A stretch of DNA of 64,000 nucleotides from Basidiobolus meristosporus CBS 931.73 (GCA_002104905.1 MCFE01000070.1:1-64000); one strand, 5' to 3'; positions 1 through 51,760 are shown, numbered from the stretch's first letter. A program made the numbers and translations. Notes: generated from the letters alone by a model not told the origin.

Positions 1-44
1 CAGTAGTAGACATTGCAGAGAGTGACAGCTTGGGGCTCATAATC

Positions 45-394
45 TGTTGTAAGAGTCTTGGAGATATTGGAAGTGATTTGGAGAACAAGTAGATTATGTG
101 GTTTTCACGTAAAGATTTTTTAAATGTAAAAGTAGTATTTATACTTTTACATGGTTGTGGCATTAGAAACATGTAGAATAGGTTAAGGAAGGTTCCAAGA
201 GCATGTGTGCAAAGTTTGAGGCTGCTTGGACAACTTTGAAAATTTTCATGCTCAGGGTACCTGGTATTTTGGTGAGAATATTTCAAGTAAATCCCAACAA
301 GGAATTTTGGTCAGTATTCTCTAGGATTTGAAGGTGATGCTATAAGTGACCAAGTTAGGTGAATATTTAGGTGGAAATACAAGTTTTTACAACA
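45..394 (-). mobile_element. Ty1/copia family A LTR; 5' LTR of a minus-strand element running off the left edge
   Basis: Termini TGTTGTAA...TTACAACA; same sequence as LTRs at 1132, 1570, 2064 and 38703; adjacent 31-44 reads GATTATGAGCCCCA on the minus strand (primer-binding-site-like). Confidence 0.85.
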
Positions 395-603
395 CAAGGA
401 AGGTCCCAAGAACATGTGTGCAAAGTTTGGGGCTGTTTGGACAACTTTGAGAATTTCATGTTCTGGGTACCTGGTATTTTGGTGAGAATATTTCAAGTAA
501 ATCCCAACAAGGAATTTGGTCAGTATTCTCTAGGATTTGAGGGTAATGATCTAAGTGACTAAGTTAGGTGAGTATTTAGGTGGAATTGCCAATTTTTACA
601 ACA
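395..603 (-). repeat. Tandem partial duplicate of LTR A (repeats ~185-394)
   Basis: aaggaaggtcccaagaacatgtgtgc...ttttacaaca directly re-copies the second half of the preceding LTR. Confidence 0.8.
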
Positions 604-1569
604 GAGTTGTCAGCCATCATACTCAGAACTATAGATCTGATCATATTGTGGCAGTCAAGTGGATATTTAGATGCCTGAACAAAACTGCTGATATCTGCTT
701 AAGATACACTTATCAGTATTCAGAACAGCGCTTGTGGGATACTCTGATGCTGATTGGGGATACAGTATGGAAGACAAAATATCCACCACAGAATACACCT
801 TTCTTTACTGCAAAGGAGCAGTTTAATGGAATCCAAGAAAGCAACCAACCATAGCACTTTCCACTACAGAGGCTGAGTATATGGCAGCCTGTGAAGCTAC
901 AAAAGAAGCAGTGTGGTTAAGAAAGCTTTTTACAGACTTAGGCCTATGTCAAAAAACATCTATTACTTTATTTCAAGATATTCAAGGATGTAAGTAATTA
1001 GTTGGAAATCCAACTTTTGATGCTTGAACTAAGCATATAGATATTAGACATCATTTCATACATGAAGCTATCAAGATTAACTTAGTTATCTTAATTTACT
1101 CTCCTTCTGAAGAAATGACTGCAGACATATTTGTTGTAAGCGTCTTGGAGATATTAGAAGTGATTTGGAGGACAAGTAGATTATGTGGTTTCACTTAATG
1201 ATTTATTGAGTGTAGAAGTAGTATTTATACTTTTACATGGTCTTGGCATACAAAACATGTAGAATTGATTAAGGCAGGTCCCAAAAACATGTGTGCAAAG
1301 TCTGTGGCTGTTTGGACAACTTATCTAATTTTCATGTTCTGGATACCTGGTATTTTGATGAAAATATTATAAGTGAATCCCAACAAGAATTTTGGTCATT
1401 GTTCTCTAGGATTTGAAGGTAACAATCTAAGTGACTAAGTTGGGTGTATATTTAGGTGGAAATTACAAATCCTAACAACAATATTTACCAAACCATCAGC
1501 TAGAGACATGATTGAATATCCTAGGTCAAAATCACAACCAGTCAGTATGAATATTTAGTTCAGTGGGAG
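604..1569 (+). mobile_element. Degenerate Ty1/copia RT-end/RNase H remnant with polypurine tract
   Basis: Encodes KQPTIALSTTEAEYMAACEATKEAVWLRK, KHIDIRHHF and ADIF|TKP with stops and frameshifts; purine tract agtgggag immediately precedes the LTR at 1570. Confidence 0.85.
1132..1480 (-). mobile_element. Solo LTR (family A) inserted antisense into the copia RNase H
   Basis: TG...CA termini; 5-bp target duplication ATATT (1127-1131 and 1481-1485) splits the ADIFTKP motif. Confidence 0.9.
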
Positions 1570-1918
1570 TGTTGTAAAGATCTGTAATTCCACCTAAATA
1601 TTCACCTCACTTAGTCACTTAGATCATTACCCTCAAATCCTAGAGAATACTGACCAAGATCCTTGTTGGGATTTACTTATAATATTTTCATCAAAATACC
1701 AGGTGCCCAGAACATGAAAATTTTGAAAGTTGTCCAAACAGCCCTAAGCTTTGTACACATGCTTTTGGGACCTTTCTGACTCTATTCTACATAAAATTTA
1801 TGCTGAGACCATGTAAAAGTATAAATACTACTCTTACATTCAATAGATCATTAAGTGAAAACCACATAAGCTACTTGTCCTCCTAATCACTTCCAATATC
1901 TCCAAGACTCTTACAACA
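1570..1918 (+). mobile_element. 3' LTR (family A)
   Basis: TGTTGTAAAG...TTACAACA directly after the polypurine tract. Confidence 0.88.
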
Positions 1919-2063
1919 CAATAATGGCTATTGTAAGATCTATGATTCATGATCAAATTTATCTTAGGATGTTTAGGTGATATCAATTGCTATAGCTGTA
2001 TCTTTAAAAATAGGAGTTACAGTAGAATAATTTGGGATTTTACTCCATCTAAGACATGGTTTG

Positions 2064-2410
2064 TGTTGTAAACTTCGTAATTCCACCTAAATATTGACCT
2101 AACTTAGTCACTTAGATCATTACCCTCAAATCCTAGAGAATACTGACCAAATTCCTTGTTGGGATTTACTTAGAATATTTTCACCAAAATACTATGTACC
2201 CAGAACATGAGAATTCTCAAAGTTGTCCAAACAGCCCCAAACTTTGCGCACATGTTCTTGGGACCTTCCTTAACCTATTTTACATGTTTGTAATGCCAAG
2301 ACCAGGTAAAAGTATAAATACTACTTTACATTCAATAAATGATTAAGTGAAAACCACATAATCTACTTGTTCTTCCAATCACTTCCAATATCTCCAAGAC
2401 TCTTACAACA
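2064..2410 (+). mobile_element. Solo LTR (family A)
   Basis: TG...CA termini; 5-bp target duplication GTTTG (2059-2063 and 2411-2415). Confidence 0.9.
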
Positions 2411-3115
2411 GTTTGGGTATAGACAGAGTGCAGAGCACCTACAAATATTTGGTTGCACAGAATATGCCAAGACATTGCCAGGAAATCAGTCAAAATTTGA
2501 ATAAAAAAGCGTGAATTATATATTCTTGAGCCTTCTTGTTTACCAAGAGTATCCTCATTCTGTTTCTCCACCACCTCTTTGCACACTTCCATATTGCCTG
2601 CTTATGGGCTATACCCATTGTTTTGAATGATTCTACTGTTATTTCTTAGCTTATAGTAGACTCAGGGTAATAGTTAGTAACCCTACCAACACTGTTGCTG
2701 TTAAGTACATCTGGGTCTGAACACAAGCAATGCTCACTACTTGCTCTGATGCAGGCAAGCTTTTCACAATTTTAGCTACTAATCCCTCAGTGGAATGGTG
2801 GAGACTAGCAGCAATCTGGGCTTGAAGTCTGGCAATATCACAATAAAGCATTACCATACCACCCCTCCTCACTTTTTTATCTCCTGGCACAGGCATTTTG
2901 ATCACTCATGCATCACTGTAATCGCCAAAAAATCATCAATCACAGCAAAAACAGATCTAACTTTATTTAATATCATAAGGATTTCACCAGATGGTTTGAT
3001 CAATATAGCACTAGAAACCGCCCATCCTATGCATTGGGTCAGTTGGAAAGTTCAAGATCCAACATTGGCTTGCCCATACTATCAACTGCTGCTGGACCCA
3101 TTGATACCATGCGCC

Positions 3116-3391
3116 TTAGCACCAAGTGGTTTTATAGCAAAAGGTGTTTGCGCCAATAAGGTCGTGACAGCAATTGGACATGCATTTGGAGTTGGACTCG
3201 TCAATGGTCCAGTATTTCTTGCTAGAATTGTACCCGGAGTTGTAGCACTTTTTCCCGCAATCGTAGGTCGGGTATTGGCCTGGCAAACCGCAGTCGGATT
3301 TCTTCGAGCACCAGACCATCATGGGACACCCGGCGTCCACAAGAGCGGTGAAGATCCCCATGGTGGCAAGCAGGGCGAGAACAGACTTCAT
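3116..3391 (-). CDS. Small secreted cysteine-rich protein (91 aa, 10 Cys)
   Basis: Hydrophobic signal peptide MKSVLALLATMGIFTALVDA; even Cys count; a decayed paralog next door shows it is a real gene family. Confidence 0.75.
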   Translation of the reverse strand: MKSVLALLATMGIFTALVDAGCPMMVWCSKKSDCGLPGQYPTYDCGKKCYNSGYNSSKKYWTIDESNSKCMSNCCHDLIGANTFCYKTTWC

Positions 3392-3488
3392 CTTGAATGG
3401 TGGGGGCTAGCCGGAAGTGAGGTTCCCTTTTATCAATGAATTATCTGTGCACGATGACCCAATGATTCACACGAATTTGGCCGGAGGG

Positions 3489-3676
3489 TTACGAGCGCTT
3501 CATTATGTGTAAGGCATCACTAATTCGGGAACAAGGGGTGTCCTTGTCGATCTTTTCATGGTGGTATCTGGGCCTACACTCAGCGTAGTCGCCACGTATA
3601 CTCCAGAGCATGTTTTTAGAATTGTAGTCAGAGATGTAGTAGTGGCCCCCTTTTCTTTGGTGCACCACACCATCAC
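3489..3676 (-). pseudogene. Frameshifted paralog of the 3116-3391 secreted protein
   Basis: VMVWCTK matches MMVWCSK; after a frameshift YYISDYNSKNMLWSIRGDYAEC..HEKIDKDTPC aligns to CYNSGYNSSKKYWTIDESNSKC..HDLIGANTFC; no signal peptide visible and several Cys lost. Confidence 0.6.
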
Positions 3677-4371
3677 TGCTTCAGGGTCACCGAAATGGGG
3701 GGCAGTGTCAAGGTAGATCATTGCCAAATGAATTCGGCCTGAACCAATGCTTGGCTTTCCTTATTTCCCTCGGTAACCAAATGCGTCGGTTACTCGGGCG
3801 ACGTCTTTGGTGATCAGGGAAATCTGGAAATGGCCGGTTGATCAGCAGCGATTGGGCCTTCCCAGTACGATGAATGCTGTGCAACTGATAATCAATCCGT
3901 CGACCGTGGTCAGGGAGATCGCGAACGAATGTATGTGGGGTCAGCTCATGTGTGCATAGATCCGGGGAGAATTCAGACCTGAGCTTCCGATTCTACGACA
4001 TGACAAGAAACGAAGCCAGCAATCCATTGAATAGATCAGCCGAGAAGAATCCTACAGATGTCATGATTGAATGCGGGTAATGGAGCACCATTCGGAACTT
4101 TAATGAAACGGTGGGCAGATCTCTGGTGATTATCGCATGTGGCCTATCAGGGCGTTGTGAAGCAGTAAACTCTAATATAACCATACCAACGGTTCCTCTC
4201 ATCCATTGACTAATAGGAACTGTGTGTGACATCCCCACTTGTTTCACTGTGAATGATATTGCGCAGTTCAGTAGGATATCTGGTCGGAAAACTGGCCACT
4301 CTACCGCAGTATTGACTCGTGTAATCCTCCGACCACCACAAAGCTGTCTCCCGGCCAAGGAGGAGGGCTTC

Positions 4372-4378
4372 TATAAAT
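4372..4378 (+). promoter_or_regulatory. TATA box (TATAAAT)
   Basis: About 60 nt upstream of the ATG at 4437; AATAAA at 4777-4782 follows the stop. Confidence 0.5.
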
Positions 4379-4436
4379 ACGTCAGGTGCGTGTTGCCTTT
4401 GGTCACACGTCTTTCAGGTCCGACTTCCGAAACCCC

Positions 4437-4754
4437 ATGCGCCCATTCGCCCTCGTCGCCGTAGCTTTCCTGGCCATTGCCTCTACCACCGTCCAGGCTG
4501 GATCCTTTTATGCCTGCGTGAATTCCGACGGTGGAAACTGCACTGAGCGTCAATGCAGCAAGGGCAACTGTTGCAACTTCCAGGCTGATATGAAGAATAA
4601 CATGGCCAGCGGATGCGCGGCCAACCGCGTCGGATGTACCATCTACTACAACTCAAACTGCCAAGGGCAATCCTTCCTGTTGGACAACCAGTGCTTCCAG
4701 AACCTACCTGCCTTCATCAAGAACAACAATGCCTCTGTGAGATGTCATTTCTAA
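4437..4754 (+). CDS. Small secreted Cys-rich protein (105 aa, 10 Cys), beta/gamma-crystallin-like
   Basis: Signal peptide MRPFALVAVAFLAIASTTVQA; Greek-key-like CTIYYNSNCQG...ASVRC; flanking TATA and AATAAA. Confidence 0.8.
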   Translation: MRPFALVAVAFLAIASTTVQAGSFYACVNSDGGNCTERQCSKGNCCNFQADMKNNMASGCAANRVGCTIYYNSNCQGQSFLLDNQCFQNLPAFIKNNNASVRCHF

Positions 4755-5933
4755 GTAATCAACCTGGTGTCTCCTGAATAAAGTTTCAATGGCCACCAAT
4801 GTTCGGTTTCAGCATACCAGTTATCTCTACAAATCGCTGAACCATCCTGCGGCACGTTTCCAATCCCAATCACTCAACTGAATGAATCGTGCAGTGCAGG
4901 CCTCTAAAGGCCACTATACGCATTCATGCATCTCTTTTATATTCGATGCCAGAGCCAATCACCGTGTTGCCGAAAGTGCATTTGCCCTTCCACACAATGA
5001 GGTGTTCCATATACGCGTAACTGATGGCTCCTCCATCGAATCAGACGAGTTAGGGTCTTACAGCACTTTGTCTTCTGACGCATATCCTTGTGCCCTCATC
5101 CTAGCCCAAGTGAGATTGATCACCTTAGGCACCAGATTCCGGTTCCTATATTGACATTTAGACTTGCTGATCGTAAGAATCATTTGTGTTGCGGGATCCG
5201 TGTTGCGGGATCCACCAAAAACGGGTCCGTCTCATTGTGATCGTGGATTCATCACCATCCCCAGAGCCACGAGGCAAGTTTCGACCCCCGAATAGATGGG
5301 CAGGATCAAGTCTACTCCGCACGTATGTTTACTACGTCGCGACCAGAACACCCTACGTATGCGTGAACTCGGACGGGTGTAGCTTATTATTAGTTAGCCT
5401 ACAGATGGGAACGTTCCATACGAAGCATGCGTGGCTGATGTGACACCTACCGATCAAAATAGCAACCCATTAACCATATTCCAACCATTCCAACCTAGAG
5501 TGGACGAGACTCTCACGCGATCGAAACCAACGTGGTGTTCTTCCCTTTCCTGTGGAGCTTCCAACGGACGACCAAATCCAGGCCGCCGAATACACTCCAG
5601 AGAACCCTCGGCCAAATCGATCAGCGGCCATGCCAACCCCATCCAGATTAACCAAATCTAACCGAGGAATCCCGCTCCCCATGTTTGGCATCATTCAGCC
5701 ACAACCACATTGGCATTGACATTTACTTCCACTTCCACAGTCGGCAACCACTTCCAAGCCGGATTTGGCAGCATTTCATACGTAGGATGATGTTTGCACA
5801 ATTTATTGACTAGAATCTCCTGTGATGTTTGCACACATTTATTTGTTGACTAGAATCTCCCGGAATCCGGGTTTCACTTTCTCTCGATTTCGGTCCCTGA
5901 CTGCCCCGTCATGCCCATTGGCCTCGGGATCGA

Positions 5934-8554
5934 CTAGAACTTGATCTCGAACCTGGTGTCCATGGAGAGCTCCAATTCGGTGATGGTCAAGAGCTCCTTG
6001 GCAGCATCGTAAGTCCAGCTTCCGTACTCGATACCGTAGATGGTGACTCTCTCGGGCTTCCTCTTGAGACCCATGACCACGACCGACTCGAGGTTGGCCC
6101 CGGTGTAGTAGTTGAATCTTCCTTCGTAGCGGATGCCCCGGGTGTCCGCGGTGTAGCGGACCTCGGAGAAGTAGCCCCTCACGTCGGTGCTCTCGCCGTC
6201 GTCGAAGTACATGCTACCGGTGGCCTCCTCACGCTCGTCCAGCGCGACCAACAGTTTGAATGGGTTGTGGGCCATGTCGGCGATCACCAGCTCCGGCTTC
6301 TGAATGGGCACCACGTGGCCACCACGGATGTGAAGCGGGATGTCCCCGTCCAATGGTGCGGGCAGCAAGTGGGTCTTTCCTCCCTCGACCTTCTCGTAGT
6401 TGTAGAAGTTGTACCAGACCCCCTTGGGGAAGGCGGCCTCGACCGCGTCGGCATTCTCGGTCAATACGGGGGAGACGAGGATGGCGGGACCGAGGAGGAT
6501 CTCCTCCTCGTTGCTGAGGAAGCTTGGGTCGTCCTGGAACTCGAAGGGGAGGGGTCTCCATACGGGCAAGCCGCTGGTGTGGGCGTATTGGAACTGGGTG
6601 TAGATGTATGGCAGAAGGGAGTACCGGGTGTTGAGCGCCTTGCGACTGGCCTCCGCCACTGACGGCCAACGGTAGGCCTCCTGGGAGATGGCCCCCTTGA
6701 CGTTGTGGTTACGGGAGAAGGGGTAGAAGGATCCCAGCTGCATCCAACGTAGACACAGCTCCTCCGTGGTGTTACCGTTGAAGCCGCAGATGTCGGAGCC
6801 GACCAGGGGGACGCCGAACATTTGGAAGCTCAGGATCCCTGGGATGGAGTATCTCAGATACTCCCATTTCGACGCGTTGTCCCCGGTCCAATGGGCCTCG
6901 TGGTGTCCGGAGCTGGGGAAGGTGGACCGTCCCAGGACGAAGGTACGCTTCTCGGGAGCGATGTCCAGCAGGGCCTTGCGTGTGGCGATGGCCTCCATAT
7001 GGCCGAAGAGGTTGTGCACCTGGAACTCGGTGAGGCCGTTGTAGTGGGTGGCTTCGGTGCTGACCGTGTGCACCGAGAGGTTCCCGTAGAAGTTGGAGAT
7101 GTTGTAGGCAGGGTTGGGGAAGGTCTGGGGCACGTTCAGGTCATAGTCGGGATCCAACCACGGGTATGGCGGGGTTCCGGTGCGGTTGGTGCCGCAGGAT
7201 CCGACGCAGAAGGAGGATGGCTCGTTCATGTCGATCCAGAGTCCATCGACCGGCACCTTGGAGTGGAAAGTGGAGATCTGCTTGCTCCACCACTTGGTGG
7301 TGTTGGGATTGAACCAATCCGGGAACCCGGTGTATCCGGGCCACACTTGACCAATGTAGATCGAACCATCCGGGTTCTTGATGAAGGTGTTCTGCTCCAC
7401 GCCCTCGGTCCAGGCCGGGTAGTTCTCGTCCCTCTCGATAGCAGGGTCGATGATCAGTACGTAGTGCTTGCCCTCGGAATGAAGCTTGTCAATGAAGGTG
7501 CGCATCACGTCCGTGGGATATCTCACCGGGTCGGTGGTGAAGTCTCTGTACTGATCCATGTAGTCGATATCCGTCCACATGGTTTCCAAAGGAATCTTGG
7601 CTTCGGCGTAGGAATTCACGACGCCCTCGACGATTTGGATGTCGTGGTAGCCGTAGCGACACTGGTTGAACCCAAGCGACCAGTAAGGCACCTGGAAAGG
7701 TCTACCAATGGTGGCAGTGTAGGCATCGATGACGTCGTACGAGTTCGGCCCCGCGAAGAACGAGAAATCGAGAACACCGCCGAGGGTTTTGTAGGCGACG
7801 GTGGCGTTTTCCAGGAGCACGTCCATCTAGAAAGGAGAGACATTAGCTTGGGAAGAAATCGGAATCTCCCGGACTGCCAGCTACTTACCCCGAAACTGTT
7901 GAGAAGGGAGACGCCGTGGGCCTTGCCGTCACGCAACTCGATGTAGAACGGATGGGTGCCGTAAATGTTCTGGTTGATGGGGTCGGCAGCGTCACGAGCC
8001 CACATCGGCTGAAGCGTGTACTCGGGATTTCTTCTGAAGTTGGAGACCACCTCGCCGATTCCGTAGATGTTGGCGTCATGGGGAAGGCGGGAAGTCAACT
8101 CGCGGTACTCCTTCTCGTAGATCAACGGGATCCCGGTGGTGTCGAAGATGGTTTCCCCGGTGTCCTTGCGTCGGATCCAGAAGGAGAAGGGCTCGCTCTC
8201 GTAGTGGAACTCCAGGAGACTTTCGGCGGAAACCTTGGGGTTGAAGGAGTGATCAGGTGCGAGGAGATCCTCCGGGACCTCGAATGCGTTCTCATTTGGA
8301 TCAAGGATCTTCACATGGATTCTCGCCCTTTCCATGGTCACTTGGACCTCGAGGTTTTCCGAATCCTGCCCGTATCTGTTGCACGGCGGCCCATCCAACG
8401 TGAGACCGATCACCATGGTGTTTTCGTTGACGCTGACGTCGGTGGTACGGTAACCGGGGCACACAAGCTCGGCTGTCCTCTCTATGGGACTGGCATCGGT
8501 AGATACGCCGAGAAGGGCCAAGGCGAGTGTAAATGGCTTTAACCACTTTGGCAT
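5934..8554 (-). CDS. Secreted GH31 alpha-glucosidase (~852 aa; exons 8554-7889 and 7826-5934)
   Basis: Signal peptide; catalytic WIDMNEP and HWTGDN motifs; 62-nt GTAAGT...GCTAAT...TAG intron (7888-7827) joins LLNSFG|MDV in frame. Confidence 0.95.
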
Positions 8555-9866
8555 TTTGGTGGGAAGGGGGAGGAGGGGGATTGTTTGTTGCCATGGCCTG
8601 TGTTTCGGACGAGGCATTTATACGTTTTGACCGACTCCGGTCAGCCCGAATCAACCTCGATGAACCAGATGGCCACCGTTTGGAACAGCCTACACCCGTC
8701 CATTCGGCCTAAAGAGAAAATCCTAACCGCGAACTGGGCCAAACGAGCAGACTGGGCAGGCTCCGCTATCGCATGGATGTCAATGTAGTGGACTTCGGCT
8801 GGATGAGTTAGGCTTGGTGACCAAGTCAACCTCGTCGGTTACGGAATTAATTTCACCTTATTCGTACACCGCACTCTCCAAACGGGACTCTCGGCTCCAG
8901 CAGGTGGTGGCTGAAATGTCTCACTTCATTCCAGGAATCGGGAAACTCAGCAAATCCCCAGGTGGTACGTTTCCTAGTATGGGGCCTTGGTGCGTAGTGT
9001 GGCTTGCTTCACTACGAAAGGTGGAATTTTAAGCCGAAACTATAGTTGTCCCAGCCTGGACATAATTGGCATGCGTCTTGGAAATGGCAGCTGTTTCATA
9101 TCCAGCGAGATGCCCCACCCTGATCTTGGACGCCCCTTCACAGCCAGTATTTCCCACCTCGCTAGTGTGTATGCGAGGAGTGCGGAAGGGGAGTGTGCTC
9201 TCCGCTGACAAGCAAATAAACGAATAAATCCAGATTCAAGGTTAAAGCTGATTTCATGACGATATCTAGATGGTGGCAATATCTAGATGATTTCGATCTT
9301 TGGATGATTACCGAGAACGAGATATAGCTGACATTTAGCCGATTCCAATTCCCTGGTGTTTTCGCGCACGATATCTGTCCCGGATAGGCAACCCGATGCC
9401 CGCATCCGGCTGGGGTGGCGCAGAACTCGATCAGCTGTGGCCAAACCCACTTAAGAAACTCGAGAAATTCAATACCCCACTTGACCACACCCGTCAATTA
9501 ACACTGGCCTGGGATACCGGCCGATGCCGGTAGATTGGATTTTGCAGAGTATGAAGCTTGCTCAAGCATAGTTAACAATTCACTAGAAATTTAGTCGAGA
9601 TTCATTTGCCTGCATCGAAGTGCTTGGTACGAAATATTCACAAACAGTTACACAACTCTATGTCTAAGACATGATTGAAGAAGGATGGCATTTTGCCTAA
9701 TCGGCACATAATTTAAATGCAATCATGGCTACCCAAATTATATTATGAACACTATAGATACGTTATAAAAAGAACTGGTGATTTATTTCCATTTTCAAGA
9801 GTTGTACCTGAAGAAAGAGATATGTAAGCAACTTGAAAGATGGAACAATAGTGGTACAGATAAGAA

Positions 9867-9945
9867 TCAGATAAGACGTAATTAGGTAGCTGTCTATTTT
9901 TCGTCAGTATCCCAAAGGATTACAGCCAAATGCCTTAATCATCAT
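9867..9945 (-). ncRNA. snR13: Box C/D snoRNA copy 1 (snR13-like)
   Basis: ATGATGA...CTGA; guide AGGCATTTGGCT antisense to LSU rRNA AGCCAAATGCCT; second element GCTACCT; terminal stem AGAA/TTCT. Confidence 0.85.
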
Positions 9946-10098
9946 TTTCTAGGGATTGATAGGTTCGATGCTTACTCTGAATGTTTGCTCGCCGGCATGT
10001 CTTCGATACGGATGTTTGAGCATTAACGATCCACCTGCAATACTGTGGAAAGAGTTTAGCAAATGGTGAAAGAATAAAGGGTTCGTTGTGGGATATGC

Positions 10099-10177
10099 TC
10101 AGATAAGACGTAATTAGGTAGCTGTCTATTTTTCGTCAGTATCCCGAAGGATTACAGCCAAATGCCTTAATCATCAT
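10099..10177 (-). ncRNA. snR13: Box C/D snoRNA copy 2 (snR13-like)
   Basis: Same core; cUUCGg internal hairpin; terminal stem TGC/GCA. Confidence 0.85.
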
Positions 10178-10313
10178 TGCAAGTCGGTGACGGAAATGCA
10201 ACCTACCTAGTGACATGAAAGCTAAGCGGGAAGTGGGGAATCGTACAATCACAACGGCGGCCTATCCAGATTGGAATTAGATTGGTGTTTGGTAAATTTA
10301 TGAGAGCGATTTA

Positions 10314-10392
10314 TCAGAGTAGACGTAATTAGGTAGCTGTCTATTTTTCGTCAGTATCCCGAGGGATTACAGCCAAATGCCTTAATCATCAT
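10314..10392 (-). ncRNA. snR13: Box C/D snoRNA copy 3 (snR13-like)
   Basis: Same core; 9-bp terminal stem AGCGATTTA/TAAATCGCT. Confidence 0.85.
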
Positions 10393-10543
10393 TTAAATCG
10401 CTTGAGTTCGAGATACTCTACCTTAATATGTACAGTATGTAAGGAGGTCATGTAGTTTGCTTTACAGTGTGGATCAACATATTGACAATCTATGGAAAGG
10501 AGTTGTTAGCATTGAAGTTTAGGTTGAAAGGGTCTACTGCAAA

Positions 10544-10623
10544 TCAGATATAGACGTAATTAGGTAGCTGTCTGTTTTTCGTCAGTATCCCAAGGGATTA
10601 CAGCCAAATGCCTTAATCATCAT
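10544..10623 (-). ncRNA. snR13: Box C/D snoRNA copy 4 (snR13-like)
   Basis: Same core; terminal stem CTGCAAA/TTTGCAG. Confidence 0.85.
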
Positions 10624-10773
10624 TTTGCAGATCACCAACTACTGAGGTTTACTTACTTTTTACAAGAGACGGCCACGACTTCCACGATTATATATACACC
10701 ATTGGAAATTATAGTACAAGTCACTAAGAAAGAATTAGGGGTTAGTTGTCGGTCAAGTGGAAATGATCACTGC

Positions 10774-10853
10774 TCAGATATAGACGTAATTAGGTAGCTG
10801 TCTGTTTTTCGTCAGTATCCCGAAGGATTACAGCCAAATGCCTTAATCATCAC
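10774..10853 (-). ncRNA. snR13: Box C/D snoRNA copy 5 (snR13-like)
   Basis: GTGATGA...CTGA; UUCG loop; terminal stem TGC/GCA. Confidence 0.85.
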
Positions 10854-11004
10854 TGCAAGCGGATCGCACATGTGAATTCGAGCACTTACGTTTTTTGTCG
10901 GAGAGATATCCGGGACGAGGAGAAGCATCCGCAAATGTGTGCTTTTGTGGAGAAGAAGGATTAGCAAAAACGATCGAATGATGTTCGGTTGCGTATGCGT
11001 GTTC

Positions 11005-11084
11005 TCAGATAAAGACGTAATTAGGTAGCTGTCTATTTTTCGTCAGTATCCCGGAGGATTACAGCCAAATGCCTTAATCATCAT
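11005..11084 (-). ncRNA. snR13: Box C/D snoRNA copy 6 (snR13-like)
   Basis: ATGATGA...CTGA; UCCG loop; terminal stem weak. Confidence 0.82.
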
Positions 11085-11514
11085 TGTGTACATACGTCTT
11101 ACAACAGCAAGAATTCATGATATTTACCTAGCAGACGGGATCACACATGGTAGAATCGGATATGGATGGTGAGTGAAGAAAGAATTTCATCACAAATCTA
11201 TTTATATTCCGAACTCGACTCTTCTTGGACGCGAAAAAAAACCATCTTCAACGCACCCCTGTCATCAAGCCTTATACGAGGGTGATGGATCCCTGGAAAT
11301 CAACCATCTGGATTTGGTGTGGATTTGGTGGAAAGCACGGCATTGATTTGAGGTTTGCATGTTTATTAACGTTGATAATATAAAGATAGCAAATCTAGAG
11401 ATACAGTAAAGTATTTTCAAAAAGCTTAAGAAATACAAAACAAAATATACAGCCAATAATATTTATCAACCTTCAAACAGCATTGAATAGATGCATCCCT
11501 TCATGTGGCTCAAA

Positions 11515-14500
11515 TCAGGATTTTTTTGGTCGTTTCAATCCGCTTTCAATGATGAATGTTGGCTCATTCTCTTCGAAAGTTCGCTTCTTGGGTTTGGGTG
11601 CGCTCATACGTACACCACTGGTCTTCTTGACTTGTTTGAGCTTACGTTGGTTAGCCTTCATGTTCGGGGAAGTGTCACTAGCAGTATCAAACTCAAGGCT
11701 ATCGTCAAAATCTGCGGATTCTGAATCATCTTGGTAGTCGGCAACTGAGCCACTTTCATTCATTAGCTCGAGGAACTACAAAATATCAAGCGATGCTTTG
11801 TTAAGATCAGGGTTCTCTGTACGAGCGTCCTACAGGTAATGCCACATTACCCTTTCACTTGTTTGTCTAAGATCCGCGTGATCATCCGAAACATTGCTCG
11901 GGAGCATCAGTTTGTCCCACGATATTGGCTGGATTGCGCGTGGTTGCCGGAAGGCTGGCTTATCCTTGTGACCAGAATCCGAGGGATTAAAGCTTTGGCA
12001 TTTCCTATATAAACAACCGGCAATTAGACCAATCATTCATGAATTTTAACAGGAGCATCATGGCTTGGCTCGCAACTTACGCTTCATTGAGTGAATATGC
12101 GACTTTTAAATACTCTTTCAGTGTGATCAAAAGCCCCATGCAGCCAGCTATTTTGCGATAAACCCGGATTTTGGGGGGCACAGCTAGTTGTAAGACTTAG
12201 TTTAGAGGGGTGACAATCAACAAAAATTGCTGGACAAATACCATCGATGCCGTGCGGTTGCGACTCTATCTGATGCATGACATTGGTTCCAGTCACAGAG
12301 AGTACTTGGTTGATAGTATAGATAAGGTAGAGCACTTCCTCGAATGTTTTGTAATTTAGCACCGAAAGATTCTCGCAGACAAATTTACAAAATCCAAGGT
12401 CAACCTAGTCGAAAAGTTGTCAGTGTATGGACGATGATCAAGTTCGGAGAATCATAAAATACCGCAGATTCAGCAGTTCTCTCCAGATCGAAATCAAATG
12501 TCTTGATCAGCGATTTTAAAAAGTCGTGCCTGCGCTGACGTTTCTCCTTCACAAGCGTATACATGGAGTTCAAAAGCGCCTCTGGTTTAGTATCGAGTTT
12601 AACGATGGCATAGCCTGTATCGACGATCACGACAACGGTAAGTATGCGATTGCAAGTATCATTGGGAGAATACGTGTACCTAAAATGGGCTTATCCTTAG
12701 TTATCTGTCTTTGATAGTCATACGCGGTGCGAACAGCGTCGACGTTCCGTGAATGGATAAACGAAGGGTATTTCTCATTCAAGTGGCAATGCATTTTGTA
12801 GGCTTTTTCCCGGAAGTTCTTTTCGTGACTAGTTTCAAGAGCTACAATTGCGGGAACACACTAAATACAACATTCAAGCTAGCGTTAGAAGTGGCGGCCC
12901 GCAAAACTCGGTATCATCGAAAAGGACCTTGAGAGGATGGACCAAGCCCTGCTGGATAATCTGACTGACAACATCAAGCGCCAATTGTCTTAGCGTATTC
13001 TGCTCAGAGAGCATACAATCAAGGATTTTGTCAAGATAACACTGCATGAGAGAGCTGCTTACACTGTATGGCCAACAAAAACATTAATATCGAAGGGGTG
13101 GTTGAAATTGCAGTACCACATACCCAGCTTCACCCAATTCTTCAGCATTTCCTACCAGCACCTTAATGTCAACCGGTGCGTCTTTGTCATGCTCTAATAT
13201 GATCACGTAAATGTCAGCTGGAGGCCTTATTACATGGGCTAATTTCATGCCATGTTACCTTTTTCAAGAAGCTCTGATTTCTTCTGCTCAGCCAAGAGGA
13301 AATCCAGGTATACTTTCAGCAGTTGAGTCTTGAGTTCAATCGAGTTGGAGGCAAAGATGTCTCCCATCAACTGTTGGCTCGACTCGGCAAGCATTAATTT
13401 AGGTTGTGCCATATAAATATAACCTGGGTTACGCATGAGTGTGATTCTGTATGGTCCTATAAATATCGGACACTAACCTAAGCTCTGAATTGCCACAATG
13501 AGAATATTGGTTTGAAGTTTCGCAGACGCAAAGGACATGATAAGCTCAAACATGAACGGAAGGATGGGGCCCTAGCGAAACAGTGGATCATAAATCAATG
13601 CACCATTCAAGCGTAGATTCAACAAGCAGAGCTATTTACCTTGTGGATGGCATCCAAGTCGGATTGCACCTCTGTTACAGCTAGAGTTAATGCCAGACAA
13701 AATGACGATACCAAAAGAAATATCACATTACCGGGTATTTCGCGTCTCTTCTTGTCATAATTGAAGTGTTTACACAACAACCCCAAGATCATTAGAAGTC
13801 TGACAACGTTTCTGGGCGAGCTCAGATCAAGTCCTTTTTTGATCCGCTCAATCTCGGCAGTAAGTTTCGCTTACATAATGTGTTAGCCAGGGCTCATTTC
13901 TATGGTTCCAGTTTAGGCATACCTGAGCATGAACGCAACAGTTTCGACAGACGTGTATAGTTATGGGTTAGTCGATCTACTATTGCGCATAGGCAAGGGA
14001 CAACTACCAACAAAACCTAAAAAAGTCCAACCTTTAGTACCACGACATGCATATCATTGATACATACATTCCACCGACCATCTGAGAGCTCTTGGACAAG
14101 AGTGTAAACAATTCCTGTTCAAGTCCCTGAAGGAACACAGGGTCCGGGTTCTTCAACAGAGGCACAGAGTTGGAGTATATCATCAGAATAAAGTAAAGAA
14201 TCTTTTGGTCTTCAGCCTATTGAATATAGGTTATAATTTGTCCCAGAAAAGAAAACTGTAGCGCATCATACCGATGTGGATGCCTTGGTGTACGGATGCA
14301 GGACGGTGACATGATCGATCAGTAGCTCCGGGGCAGCCTTGCTAAATAGGTACAATGCATTGATACAATGCACCACAGAACCCTAACAAGTTGTTAATCT
14401 ACAACAGTACTCTCATTTCCACGGGCACAAAATTACTTGCCTTGGAGCTGTCTTCTTCGACGGAGAGGAGGTGTTCCATTAAGCAATCAACCATGCACTG

Positions 14501-17500
14501 GCATATTACAACAACACCTCGATTAAGCTTCCCCTCATTTTTCTCGATAATCTGAAGATTTGTGTGGGTTAGTAGCTATTACAGTTGAAGCTTCAGGTGA
14601 AATGTATTTACTTTCTGGATTAGAACTCCAAGGCTTTCGCCTCCACTAGCGCTCAGCATCTTGACCACATCTACAATGATCAGGGTGCGAGCTAAAATCT
14701 CTTTCTTCCCCGTGACCGACATTTTGGAAAACATTAGGCTTTGATACTGGTCAGGCGTCAATTCCTCCAACTCAAAAAGTCCACTTGATTGGCACTTGAA
14801 CGGTCCAAACCAGATTTCTTGTAGAGTCTTTAGAGCCAGTTCCTACAAGGATTCGCTTCAATTAGAGCCTTCGTCTGGGGCATTCATTTTGCCAGCGAGA
14901 ACTTACTTTAACATTAGAGTCTTCATCATTCACCCGATTTAAGAATTTGAAAGAGATGTCCACCATCATGTCATGGTCTTCACTCTTAAGATATATCTCG
15001 CGTAGTAGCTTGATGACTCTTTTACGAACATTCAACCCGGTATCCTGATGATGGGCGAGTGTTAAGCGAAAGAGATAAAGTTCAGAGTTATGATGGGGAA
15101 TTACCAAGATTCTCTCACTGATGACTTTGTAGTACTGCTGAGTAATTTCGGGTTTTTGGGAAAGATATCTGCCCACCAGATCAATAGCAGCATCACGTAC
15201 TGCAGGTGATAGATCTTGCAAACGATTACCGATGGTGTGACGTACATTAACCTTTGAAACGTGTTAGTCTTGAATATTTGGTTTGGACCAAACATGGCGT
15301 ACCTGACTCAGAATCTCCGGATGAGAAACCACCACTTGGCCTAATGCTTTTAGCGCTTTGGTTCTAAAGGCTACGACGGACATTTCCAAAGCAGCAAGGA
15401 TCTTGGAGAGAAGTACGTCAAAGCTCTGGTAAAGTCCTTGGCGAGTGCCAAGCAATTCAGCAACAGATAGAATGGTGTGACGGTCAGAGAGTTTGCTTTT
15501 CAGTAAAACACAAGGTCAGGATGGGGATATAGGCGGATCTGAAACAAGGCTATATGCTTACTCTCGTCTTTTCTCTGGTTTATCGGTGCTATTCAAAGCG
15601 AATTCTCGTAACACCTCAGAGAACTCCTTAATGGCATCTGAGCTCCATGGGGCGTCGTCGTGTCTACCAGCTTTAGAGGCTTGAATAAAACCAGATGCTG
15701 TGGCACTTCCCCAGTCGCAGAGGTAAAATTGCTTGGCACACTGTAAACGCGAGTCGGTCAGTTGTGAAGGGATTTCCAGGAAAATGGAGGGGGGAGGATT
15801 CGTACCTCTATACCAGGATCTTCCGAAGCCAGCCCCTCCAAATAATCTAACAAGCATTTTTGATACTTGAATAGATTTTGGATAAGCGGCAAGGGGGTTT
15901 CGGCAGTAATCTACGTATGAGTTCGTGCCGATTATTAAAGTGGTCAGGGGTCGGAAAAACGACACGTTGTATTACCTCTCCAGTAGGGATTTCAAGTAGC
16001 CCTCGTGCTCTGTTCTCTTGAGGTTCACTGCCCAGGTCAAAGCTCTCTGTTTCTTCTTTCTTTGGAATGACCGAGTTCATCGATTTCTTGATTTTTGCTG
16101 CAATAATCCCCAAGTAATCAATTGCCATTGACTTGGTGTATGTTTCGGCTCTTTTATCGTCGATGTATCCAACCTATTGTCGTATATCAGAAAATCTATG
16201 ACATTGAAAGGTAGTCAACTGTGGCTGCGGTACCATGATTTTACTGAAAATTCGAACAACAAGCTCGGCACCAGGCCATTCGGGTAGGTTGAGTACAGTC
16301 AAAACATCTTCCATGAAGTTATCCAAAAGCGCCCGATATTCCGCCTCGTTGGAGGATTTGTTCTTGGTACATCTGTTCCACGGGAAATCATGAGAAAATA
16401 AGCGCACCCAAATGGAAATCTGGCGATACTACCTTGAGAGAAGATATTTGAAGATATAGGAGGCGTTGAAATTGGCAGCGTCAAGTCCACTCTTACACAG
16501 GCTGCCAAACTAACAATCAAGCAGTAAGGTTAAGATTCGAGTCCCTTAGACACCCATCGACACTGAAAATAGGGTTACTTTCTCTATCAGCGCTTTCTGC
16601 GATTTCTGTAAACTTGGGCCTTCCTCATCCGGCTCTTTTTGCGTTATTTTCTCCAACTCCTCACTGCTGAATCCGTTGCGAACGATGTGATCAGCACAGC
16701 ACTGAATCAACTGCAAAAGCAAAGCAGAGACCATTTGAATGGATTTGCCATCCACAAGTCTAAAAGAAGTTGTTAAGCAGAGCCCCGATTCAGTTCGGTA
16801 AAGACTACGTACTTGAATTGTCGAAGATTGCGCCGATTCGTGGGTAATTTGATGAGGGACGTTAGGATCTCCTCCAATATCCAAGTGCGCTGATTCGGAT
16901 AGCATGTGAATATAGACCGCAGAAGTCCAAGCGCAGCTAGCTTAATGCCTTCCAAACCAGCAGGAAGAATCGAGGAACTCTCAACGAAAAACGGCGCAAC
17001 AGCGAAGTACCCCACAGTGATCATAACACCATCCGACAGCTCTTGGATATGCATCAACGAGTAGAGCTTGTTGAAGAAAGTGGTTAATGGCAGGATCAGC
17101 GAGTTCAGTTGGCGCTTGATAGTGGTGCTCTTCAGTGCGCTCTGGACCAGCGATTGATCGGAAGCATCCGCCTCGGCCAATTCAAATATCGTAAATAAAG
17201 TCCCCTTCAGCTGGTTCTTGGCTAGATTGAGACTGGATATAATGATGTCTTCGGGATATAGTTGTCGAGTAAGGGTGCCTCCGGTCATCAGGGAGAATGC
17301 ACATATAGCAGCATCAAGGCCGTGCTGAATACTCAGAAGCTTTTCCTCGACTAGATTAAGTTGATGTTGCTCACTGCTTATTTCCTCATCGTCATCGTTG
17401 GGTTTATGAGTGAAAACATCAAGGTCTTCGGCTGCACGAATTGATCTCTCGAGTATTTTCAAGAATCGACTCAAATCTTCCACATTGACATCGCCGAGTT

Positions 17501-18777
17501 TGTTGTACTGGGCAGCCTTACTGATCAATAGCGTCACTCGAGAAATGGTTTCTCTTGTTAAAAGGGCATTCTCTGCAGAGCTGGATGAGGAGATAAAGAA
17601 CTTGAAAGCATCGGTGCTCGTAGTAGAGATGGATGTGTCTGGAGTTAATGAATCTTCTGCCGCAAACATGTCATCCAAAAAGTCGACGAGTCTTGTATAA
17701 GCAGCTAAATATGATTAAATTTGTAGGATGAGTCTCTATCTATTAGTAAAAATTCCTACAAGTATTGAACCTTCCGATGGGTTGCTAAGCGCTTTTTTGT
17801 TTTCGTTGTAATCGGCGTTTCTCTTCGGAGGAGCCTTGTTGCTTTTATTTTGCGGTGGCTGTTTGGCGTTGCTTTGGACCGTTTGTTGCTTGTGTGTCTC
17901 TTGCCGATAAGCTGGCTTTCCTTCTCTACCGGTTTCTGGCACTTGATTGTCAAGGATGTTAGTAACTGAGTTTTGTGATATAACATAAATACAATTGAAG
18001 CATAAACATACCATGATTTGGCTGGGGGACCGGCTGTGGAATTGATTGTAAGTTTGGTTGTGGAGGTAGCCGTTGAATTGGTTGTGGGATTGGTTGAGAA
18101 TTCTCTGCCAACTTGGAGTCCTTGAATTTGTGAATGAAACGGAAGGCATTGCTGTGACTCGGTATCTGCTGCTGGTAAAGTTCTATTATGTCGAGACTTA
18201 GAGACTGCTCAATAAAGTGCCGTATACATTGTATTGAATTACCAGGAGGTACTGGAGCGTCCCCATCGCGATGGCAATAACCCATTACGAGCTTTGCTAA
18301 TAACGGATGAGCCGGAGGCAAGGCTTGGGGGTTCTCAGGCTGGGATGTCGAAGGAGGAATGTGAGGAGTGCTGAATTTTCTGTAGAGGCATTGAAAAATA
18401 AAACTTAGAAATGCACGAGATAAACTGGTAGAAAAGGCACCTTTACAAATATGACGCGTCAACCTCGTTCAAGAGATTCGCGATTGTGGCCACGTAACTG
18501 TTGGCTTCGTTTAAGCTACAGTTCAAGACATTATCCATGTATTCGGTATCGCCAGGGGTGCATAGAGTGAATTCATCGTGTACTATCTTTAGTGAGGGTA
18601 TCTCCTTTATTACTGATGCAGGAAGAATGGTCAGTATAGCATATATAAGGACTCTTCAGAATTATACACACTTGAAAAAGAAGGAGTCAATGATGCCATA
18701 GGCCAGTATTTGAGTGCACCGCGTACATCAGTAGGAGGGAGAAGCCTTCTACTTGTGTCCTCGCTCTCTCCTTCCAT
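11515..18777 (-). CDS. SCC2: Cohesin loader Scc2/NIPBL/Mis4 (many introns; exon structure only partly resolved)
   Basis: Exonic motifs [91 protein letters not shown]; acidic/basic C-terminal tail ending at 11515. Confidence 0.92.
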
Positions 18778-51100: not shown

Positions 51101-51760
51101 TTTTGAGCTATACAAAGTGTTATCTTAAATTTTCTCTACTTGATCATATTGTCCAAGTTCTTCATGGAGGAGTTTTTCTTTGACATAGACTAAAGTCAAA
51201 TTGTTTTTTCTGCATTCAGAAGAAAGTATGAGTGGATCATACTTGTCTGGTAAGCTGTACGCATATAGAGTATCTTTTCTTCAGTTCTTCTGCAAGTGTC
51301 TCCATTCTGGTAATGAGTTGTAGCACATCATCATCTGGCATCTTCCTCATATTGAACAAATTTTGTTTCAAATCAAGCATGCTTGACACAGACTCTGCTC
51401 TAAGGATCTTCTACATGGATTCACATGCTGCTTTGGCAGTAGTTGAAGCATGAATTTGTCCAATGAAGGAATCTTGAACATTAATGCATATGGCATTAAA
51501 GGCATTTCCCTCCTTCTCTGGAAGCTTCTCCATTTATTATGCTGCTCCTTTGGGCTCAATTTCTTCTCCTGTTACTATATATCAAAGCCTTCTGTCCTGT
51601 AGGTGGATCTTCCTCTTGAATCTCCAAAGTCTGTGGCTGATCCTATCACACCTCTCCTGTACAAGGAAAGTGATTGTATTGTTCTATTTGCTAGTAAAAG
51701 TCATCATTGGGATTGACTAAGGCAATTGGGACTCATATCCTGCTTCAATTTCAAACTGAT
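48143..51760 (-). mobile_element. Most complete Ty1/copia family B remnant (PBS, gag, PR, IN, RT, partial RNase H)
   Basis: GGATATGAGTCCC PBS-like; QSDICGPM; HTPQQNGVAE; CRLRKVLYGLKQAPK; DWGRDLIDR. Confidence 0.88.

Follow-up and report, generated by a model that had tools for sequence, protein, structure and literature searches.

A probable non-coding host gene in Basidiobolus meristosporus carries one snR13-type box C/D guide in six introns

A six-unit array between two protein-coding genes

The window, a 64,000-nt stretch of the Basidiobolus meristosporus CBS 931.73 assembly (GCA_002104905.1), contains a regular repeat array at 9867-11084 on the minus strand, comprising six units of 79-80 nt. 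The array is flanked by a GH31 alpha-glucosidase gene (window 5934-8416) and an SCC2/Nipped-B-type gene (end at ~11515), both on the minus strand, and no gene is annotated between the two in GCA_002104905.1. The open reading frame at 5934-7826 (minus strand, 630 codons) is 100% identical to a B. meristosporus CBS 931.73 GH31 protein, whose contig (MCFE01000070.1) has at positions 1-18416 the reverse of window 1-18416. The protein of the SCC2-type neighbour is split by introns.

Re-measurement bore out the preliminary description of six near-identical units of 79-80 nt at a period of 215-232 nt with unrelated spacers. Copies 1 to 6 are 80, 80, 80, 79, 79 and 79 nt long, respectively, and the start-to-start steps between units are 232, 215, 231, 230 and 231 nt. 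The units are as follows.

11005-11084, minus strand: snoRNA copy 1, 80 nt; external stem of 7 bp (CGUAUGU/GCAUACG)
10774-10853, minus strand: snoRNA copy 2, 80 nt; C box GUGAUGA; terminal stem of 4 bp
10544-10623, minus strand: snoRNA copy 3, 80 nt; terminal stem of 7 bp (CUGCAAA/UUUGCAG); source of the Rfam snR13 alignment
10314-10392, minus strand: snoRNA copy 4, 79 nt; terminal stem of 9 bp (AGCGAUUUA/UAAAUCGCU)
10099-10177, minus strand: snoRNA copy 5, 79 nt; terminal stem of 3 bp
9867-9945, minus strand: snoRNA copy 6, 79 nt; terminal stem of 4 bp

The six cores share a mean pairwise identity of 95.2%, with no variation in 72 of the 80 alignment columns. The other eight comprise the R of the C box, three hairpin loop positions, one base of an A-rich linker and the three nucleotides before the D box; the functional elements are otherwise spared by the variation in this alignment. 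Global alignment of the five inner spacers (136-153 nt) gives 60.8% identity, compared with 57.8 ± 0.6% for shuffled spacers, so that they are close to random in sequence. Selection is visible at this locus, with ~80 nt in every 230 fixed and the remainder randomised. A covariance model built from the six units returned exactly six matches in the 64-kb window, at 111-115 bits (copy 1, 114.1 bits). A weak match at 51474-51521 (17.6 bits) was dropped, as it lacks C/D boxes.

Box C/D anatomy of the units

Each unit reads, in order, RUGAUGA-UUA-AGGCAUUUGGCU-GUAA-hairpin-CUGACGA-...-GCUACCU-...-CUGA. The preliminary description had interpreted the units as box C/D snoRNAs, and indeed a C box, a D box, a terminal stem and an rRNA guide were found in all six. 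The C box is AUGAUGA in five copies and GUGAUGA in copy 2, and CUGA is present at the 3' end of every copy.

The terminal stems are formed by the own flanks of each unit and measure 7, 4, 7, 9, 3 and 4 bp in copies 1 to 6, summing to 34 bp. When the 5' and 3' flanks were re-partnered among units, the mean sum was 21.7 bp; a sum of 34 was reached by 6 of the 720 permutations and by none of 2000 shuffles. This covariation between paralogues argues that each copy has been kept as a foldable C/D unit.

Downstream of the guide, CUGUAA is followed by a hairpin of 4-5 bp (AUCC-loop-GGAU) and then by UGACGA, a C' candidate that matches the consensus at five of six positions and does not vary among the copies. 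The hairpin loop occurs as UCCG, UUCG, CUUG, CUCG or UUUG. The D' box is degenerate in that the guide is not followed by a GA dinucleotide and CUGU agrees with the consensus at three of four positions. Divergent yet active C'/D' motifs have been documented (PMC3116282). We considered and rejected a second guide ahead of the terminal D box, as no part of the unit varies more than the 3-4 nt at that position.

The repeats lie in observed or predicted introns of a probable host gene

What look like spacers are parts of a non-coding host gene that lacks an annotation, namely its exons and the arms of its introns, a point absent from the preliminary description. A GUAAGU-like 5' splice site lies 29-43 nt upstream of each unit, and a CURAY-like branch site with a YAG lies 50-63 nt downstream. 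The inner exons are ~50-70 nt long, the predicted end exons 46-47 nt and the introns 160-186 nt. The features of the host gene are as follows.

9762-11174, minus strand: predicted non-coding snoRNA host gene with seven exons and six introns, its ends placed only by the candidate TATA box and AATAAA
11199-11206, minus strand: candidate TATA box TATAAATA, ~30 nt upstream of a pyrimidine-rich putative start
10942-11127, minus strand: intron 1, containing copy 1 (GUAAAU...UGCUAAU...AAG); predicted only
10724-10889, minus strand: intron 2, containing copy 2 (GUAAGU...CAACUAAC...UAG); joint 10723|10890 in run X3
10490-10656, minus strand: intron 3, containing copy 3 (GUAAGU...UGCUAAC...UAG); joint 10489|10657 in run X3
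10262-10421, minus strand: intron 4, containing copy 4 (GUAGAG...UCUAAU...UAG); joint 10260|10421, the cut shifted by +1
10043-10206, minus strand: intron 5, containing copy 5 (GUAGGU...UGCUAAA...CAG); joint 10042|10207 in run X3
9808-9975, minus strand: intron 6, containing copy 6 (GUAAGC...UUCAG); predicted only
9782-9787, minus strand: candidate polyadenylation signal AATAAA, at a position with no cDNA-like coverage

The candidate signals at the two ends of the gene were recognised from the sequence alone, as was a UUCUUUCUUC tract ~30 nt past the candidate TATA box, which may be compared with the 5'-terminal oligopyrimidine start of the animal host genes UHG and GAS5. The predicted spliced RNA of ~400 nt has stops in all three frames and thus no open reading frame.

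Splicing was observed in the Logan contigs of a public run (X3) that is labelled 'DNA?' and was taken as cDNA from its behaviour only: its contigs have adapter ends, leave intergenic DNA uncovered and have two GT..AG introns of the SCC2-type neighbour removed. At the array, the X3 contigs cover exons 2-6, and their joints excise exactly the intervals that contain copies 2-5, each bounded by GT..AG, or CT..AC when read on the plus strand. Exon 5 (10207-10261) is skipped by one more joint, 10042|10422, which takes out a 379-nt piece containing copies 4 and 5. A run of free-standing snoRNA genes was accordingly rejected in favour of one snoRNA per intron of a non-coding host gene.

For introns 1 and 6, no spliced joint was present in the X3 contigs, and the predicted exons at 11128-11174 and 9762-9807 had zero depth; unspliced contigs extended from exon 2 up to copy 1 (10890-11033) and from exon 6 into copy 6 (9917-10044). 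Splicing of these two introns is thus predicted from their sites. The same pattern could arise if the locus made long RNAs ended by snoRNAs, of the sno-lncRNA/SLERT type, besides or instead of free snoRNAs. One candidate would be bounded by copies 1 and 6 with introns 2-5 spliced out, as suggested by the spliced exon 2-3-4 contig that is unspliced up to copy 1, by the exon 6 contig that runs into copy 6, and by the zero depth of predicted exons 1 and 7. A second would be the piece bounded by copies 4 and 5, set free when exon 5 is skipped; the joint 10042|10422 excises copies 4 and 5 with exon 5, which is the same route as for human SLERT (PMC11028025). However, Logan contigs break at 31-mers common to the six copies and assemblers clip short tips, so the absent end exons and the apparent retention may both be artefacts; a coverage hole in contigs proves nothing, and X3 is known as contigs only, under its 'DNA?' label. 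We consider such RNAs unlikely. That the array yields stable snoRNA-capped long RNAs in a fungus, beyond a six-fold guide dose, seems to us slightly less likely again; if true, it would put biogenesis of the sno-lncRNA/SLERT type outside mammals. The reading that we prefer remains a host gene from whose introns single snoRNAs would be released.

Near the 3' end of intron 1, X3 differs from the assembly by a GA inserted after 10949, a C>T change at 10965 and a missing base at 10966. These differences are absent from the DNA run X1, so X3 represents another strain or allele. The branch-site-like CUAAU is kept in X3 despite the changes at 10949-10966.

Copy number and cores are kept in a relative

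The locus was also recovered from two runs (X4 and X6) that carry another organism label and derive from a related strain or species. The flanks are syntenic in this relative, with an alignment of ~85-90%, and the interval 11057-11266, which includes the TATA region, aligns at ~84%. One long contig reaches into the array from the SCC2 flank and another from the GH31 flank. Four short contigs common to X4 and X6, and a fifth in X4 alone, fall between these two, and each short contig runs from the C-box end of one copy to the D-box end of the next; the ~130 nt in between are unalignable at 80%, and the snoRNA parts show 0-3 differences. The copy count in related genomes that had been proposed in the preliminary description therefore gives ~5-6 copies at the same place in this relative. 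Together with the unalignable spacers, this indicates that copy number and cores are kept across species and that the spacers turn over. Two loci reached via GH31 relatives, one in B. ranarum (L122) and one a B. meristosporus paralogue locus (L123), were not syntenic and had no match to the guide or to the unit model.

These data bear on whether one or a few copies are functional and the others are recent redundant duplicates drifting to pseudogenes, the copy number having no adaptive meaning. Families of snoRNAs are readily duplicated in place, and in other genomes many of their members are pseudogenes (PMC11028025); the stems of copies 5 and 2 are also short, at 3-4 bp. However, none of the six copies has lost a box, the guide, the accessory guide or the hairpin stem, whereas the intervening DNA is near-random, so the duplications must be old and every copy under constraint; the relative also retains ~5-6 copies at the same place. 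Drift to pseudogenes is, in our assessment, improbable. A prokaryote-style CRISPR array or functionless satellite, to which only the regular repeat-spacer look points (~80-nt repeats, unique spacers of 136-153 nt), has a negligible chance of being correct and is refuted by the fungal neighbour protein, the used splice sites and the terminal-stem test, as the genome is fungal, the neighbour genes have spliceosomal introns, the repeats carry C/D boxes and far exceed CRISPR length (23-50 nt, with similar-sized spacers), and the splice sites within the spacers are used.

The predicted target in the large subunit rRNA

Pairing was evaluated against a complete eukaryotic LSU rRNA on a ~10-kb metagenome rDNA contig (L036), which is not from B. 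meristosporus and matches RF02543 at full length (3119 bits, model positions 1-3401). The guide 12-mer AGGCAUUUGGCU forms 12 Watson-Crick pairs with positions 2271-2282 (AGCCAAAUGCCU) of this rRNA, with a duplex energy of -21.9 kcal/mol, and is the longest complementarity of the snoRNA across the 10-kb contig. The guide had been described as antisense to a conserved LSU rRNA segment, and this proved exact over 12 nt in the LSU rRNA of the metagenome contig. A 50-nt LSU rRNA segment was found exactly in at least 120 metagenome contigs, among them L036, and a scan of viral contigs for the rRNA segment gave no match. GCUACCU, invariant in the six copies, pairs with LSU positions 2267-2273 (AGGUAGC) of L036, so that its target overlaps that of the guide by 3 nt.

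Directly after the guide target, the rRNA reads UCGUCA, which is complementary to the C'-like UGACGA (unit positions 40-45, e.g., window 10133-10138, minus strand). We read UGACGA as the C' box because the order of the elements on the snoRNA forbids a continuous helix with the rRNA. Pairing of UAAUUACGUC with a nearby rRNA hairpin was rejected; it is not colinear and reaches only -5.3 kcal/mol.

In yeast rRNA, positions 2283 and 2288 are guanines and C2278 is methylated (PMC4174444). From these anchors and the rDNA sequence, we infer that CCAAAUG corresponds to C2277, C2278, A2279, A2280, A2281, U2282 and G2283. The D' guide is thus directed at the AAA of AGCCAAAUGCC, which includes yeast A2280 and A2281 (PMC4174444, PMC5389607). 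By the fifth-nucleotide rule, CUGU as the D' box would direct methylation to the third A (the equivalent of yeast A2281), and UGUA would direct it to the second A (the equivalent of yeast A2280). CUGU is the stronger D' by consensus (three of four positions), so the A2281 equivalent is favoured. Overlapping D' boxes (CUGU/UGUA) for a double methylation would mirror the published yeast model of UCGA/CUCGA. The sequence precondition for adjacent double methylation is present in the form of a C at -1 and overlapping D' candidates of 4 and 5 nt.

Relationship to snR13 and U15

At Rfam gathering thresholds, there was no match in the whole window. At permissive E-values, three sub-threshold matches were obtained (snR13, U8 and Afu_300), and functional elements were matched by snR13 alone. 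The preliminary description had proposed an Infernal search against the Rfam snR13 model; this model reached at most 17.9 bits, on one copy (copy 3; E = 7.5), well short of its gathering score of 47. The snR13 consensus nevertheless aligned to copy 3 at the C box, GCAUUUGGCU, GAAAAAC, AGCUACCU and the D box, so the earlier designation of the units as snR13-like stands in that both guide elements are aligned. Given the sub-threshold score, the family assignment rests on guide architecture and not on the covariance model; the functional architecture supports an snR13-type guide, and the covariance-model score stays below the cut-off for the family.

Yeast snR13 is a single, independently transcribed gene, whereas the Basidiobolus units are six intronic copies. 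The units share with S. cerevisiae snR13 (RF01223) the guide core GCAUUUGGCU, placed upstream of an internal non-consensus D' with C as the last guide base, and the accessory guide (A)GCUACCU, whose rRNA target overlaps that of the guide. The A-rich GAAAAAC before the accessory guide is common to both, and neither RNA has a conserved guide next to the terminal D box. On the other hand, the Basidiobolus units are 79-80 nt long, compared with ~124 nt for yeast snR13, and their D'-C' stem is a hairpin of 4-5 bp with a variable tetraloop, whereas the yeast stem is long and mostly without a counterpart. The D' box occupies the same position in both RNAs, but the internal boxes differ in sequence, with D' as CUGU/UGUA (UGUA/CUGUA) and C' as UGACGA in Basidiobolus, and D' as UCGA/CUCGA in yeast.

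Yeast snR13 guides Am2280 and Am2281 (PMC4174444). Its D' has been read as overlapping UCGA/CUCGA with C as the last base of the guide, and the double modification depends on the accessory guide (PMC5389607); guide and accessory guide have overlapping targets (PMC3116282). In yeast, this design is what permits two adjacent methylations. Its presence in Basidiobolus, where a short guide and an overlapping accessory guide are likewise combined with a C ahead of a degenerate D', shows that the design predates the split between Zoopagomycota and Dikarya.

In vertebrates, the same A of the helix 70/71 region is targeted by a GGCAUUUG-type guide in U15/SNORD15, which combines this guide with that of snR75. 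Compared with U15/SNORD15, the Basidiobolus RNA has the snR13-type guide only, and has it at D' instead of D. U15 has been listed as a homologue of snR75 (Gm2288 equivalent) (PMC2780460).

A probable host gene for six copies of one guide

We conclude, with a probability of roughly 0.85, that the minus strand of this locus carries a non-coding host gene, unannotated and transcribed by RNA polymerase II, with six introns that each contain one box C/D snoRNA predicted to guide modification of the LSU rRNA. After splicing and debranching, exonucleases would trim each intron back to a snoRNP core assembled on the C/D kink-turn and closed by the copy-specific terminal stem, and the mature product of each unit would be a snoRNA of ~80 nt. 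With trimming intron by intron, one transcript would yield up to six identical guides. In the assembled particle, AGGCAUUUGGCU would pair with AGCCAAAUGCCU, an LSU segment that is universally conserved and lies where helices 70 and 71 meet, and the degenerate D' (CUGU, or UGUA one base on) would place fibrillarin on the equivalent of yeast A2281, possibly on that of A2280 too. GCUACCU would serve as an accessory guide in the manner of snR13, acting on the adjoining AGGUAGC. The array may have originated by tandem duplication of an intron-plus-exon module, and since then selection would have maintained the snoRNA, the splice signals and the spacing, and nothing else. Dosage amplification by six copies of one guide would be a plausible benefit.

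This is an ordinary kind of snoRNA gene, unusual only in that one guide is repeated six times. It provides an annotation (host gene, six snoRNAs and a predicted rRNA target) for a previously unannotated locus in an early-diverging fungus. The literature searched contained no mention of Basidiobolus snoRNAs.

Comparison with other snoRNA host genes and arrays

The array is a UHG-like host gene of a layout known from animals and Neurospora, except that a single guide recurs six times in it. Drosophila and plants also have clusters in which one C/D snoRNA is repeated in tandem introns. In N. crassa, the fungal snR13 homologue CD1 is an intron-encoded singleton of 125 nt with a D' guide (PMC2780460). 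Host genes of the N. crassa clusters are non-coding, contain no more than short ORFs, are alternatively spliced and have a single snoRNA in each intron; the clusters combine different snoRNAs, and snoRNA genes in that species are mostly single-copy (PMC2780460). The non-coding layout with one snoRNA per intron and the alternative splicing are thus common to both fungi, but the Basidiobolus host gene repeats one guide six times, whereas the N. crassa clusters mix snoRNAs. Repeat-induced point mutation, which is held responsible for the single-copy snoRNA genes in Neurospora, is absent from Basidiobolus.

The mammalian SNORD113/114/115/116 and rat Bsr are tandem intronic C/D repeats that are orphan and imprinted (PMC11028025). 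As in those arrays, the same snoRNA occupies successive introns of a non-coding transcript here, with the cores conserved and the DNA between them divergent. Mammalian arrays can also give snoRNA-ended long RNAs (PMC11028025). In contrast, they comprise tens to hundreds of copies with no rRNA target, whereas the guide that occurs six times in Basidiobolus is a canonical one for rRNA and of ancient conservation. The array is a counter-example, from a fungus and with a canonical rRNA guide, to the notion that tandem intronic arrays of one snoRNA are a mammalian feature tied to orphan snoRNAs and imprinting.

Neighbouring sequence

Upstream of the annotated GH31 start (8416), the interval 8800-9300 has cDNA-like contigs at 8800-8959 and, in a three-frame read, no obvious ORF; 8802-9038 and 9225-9299 align in a contig of the relative. 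It could represent a 5' UTR, an exon missed by the annotation or a further small transcript. The G+C content of the window is very uneven, at 35% in 1-2000, 59% in 6001-8000, ~50% between 24 and 32 kb and 37-40% from there to ~58 kb.
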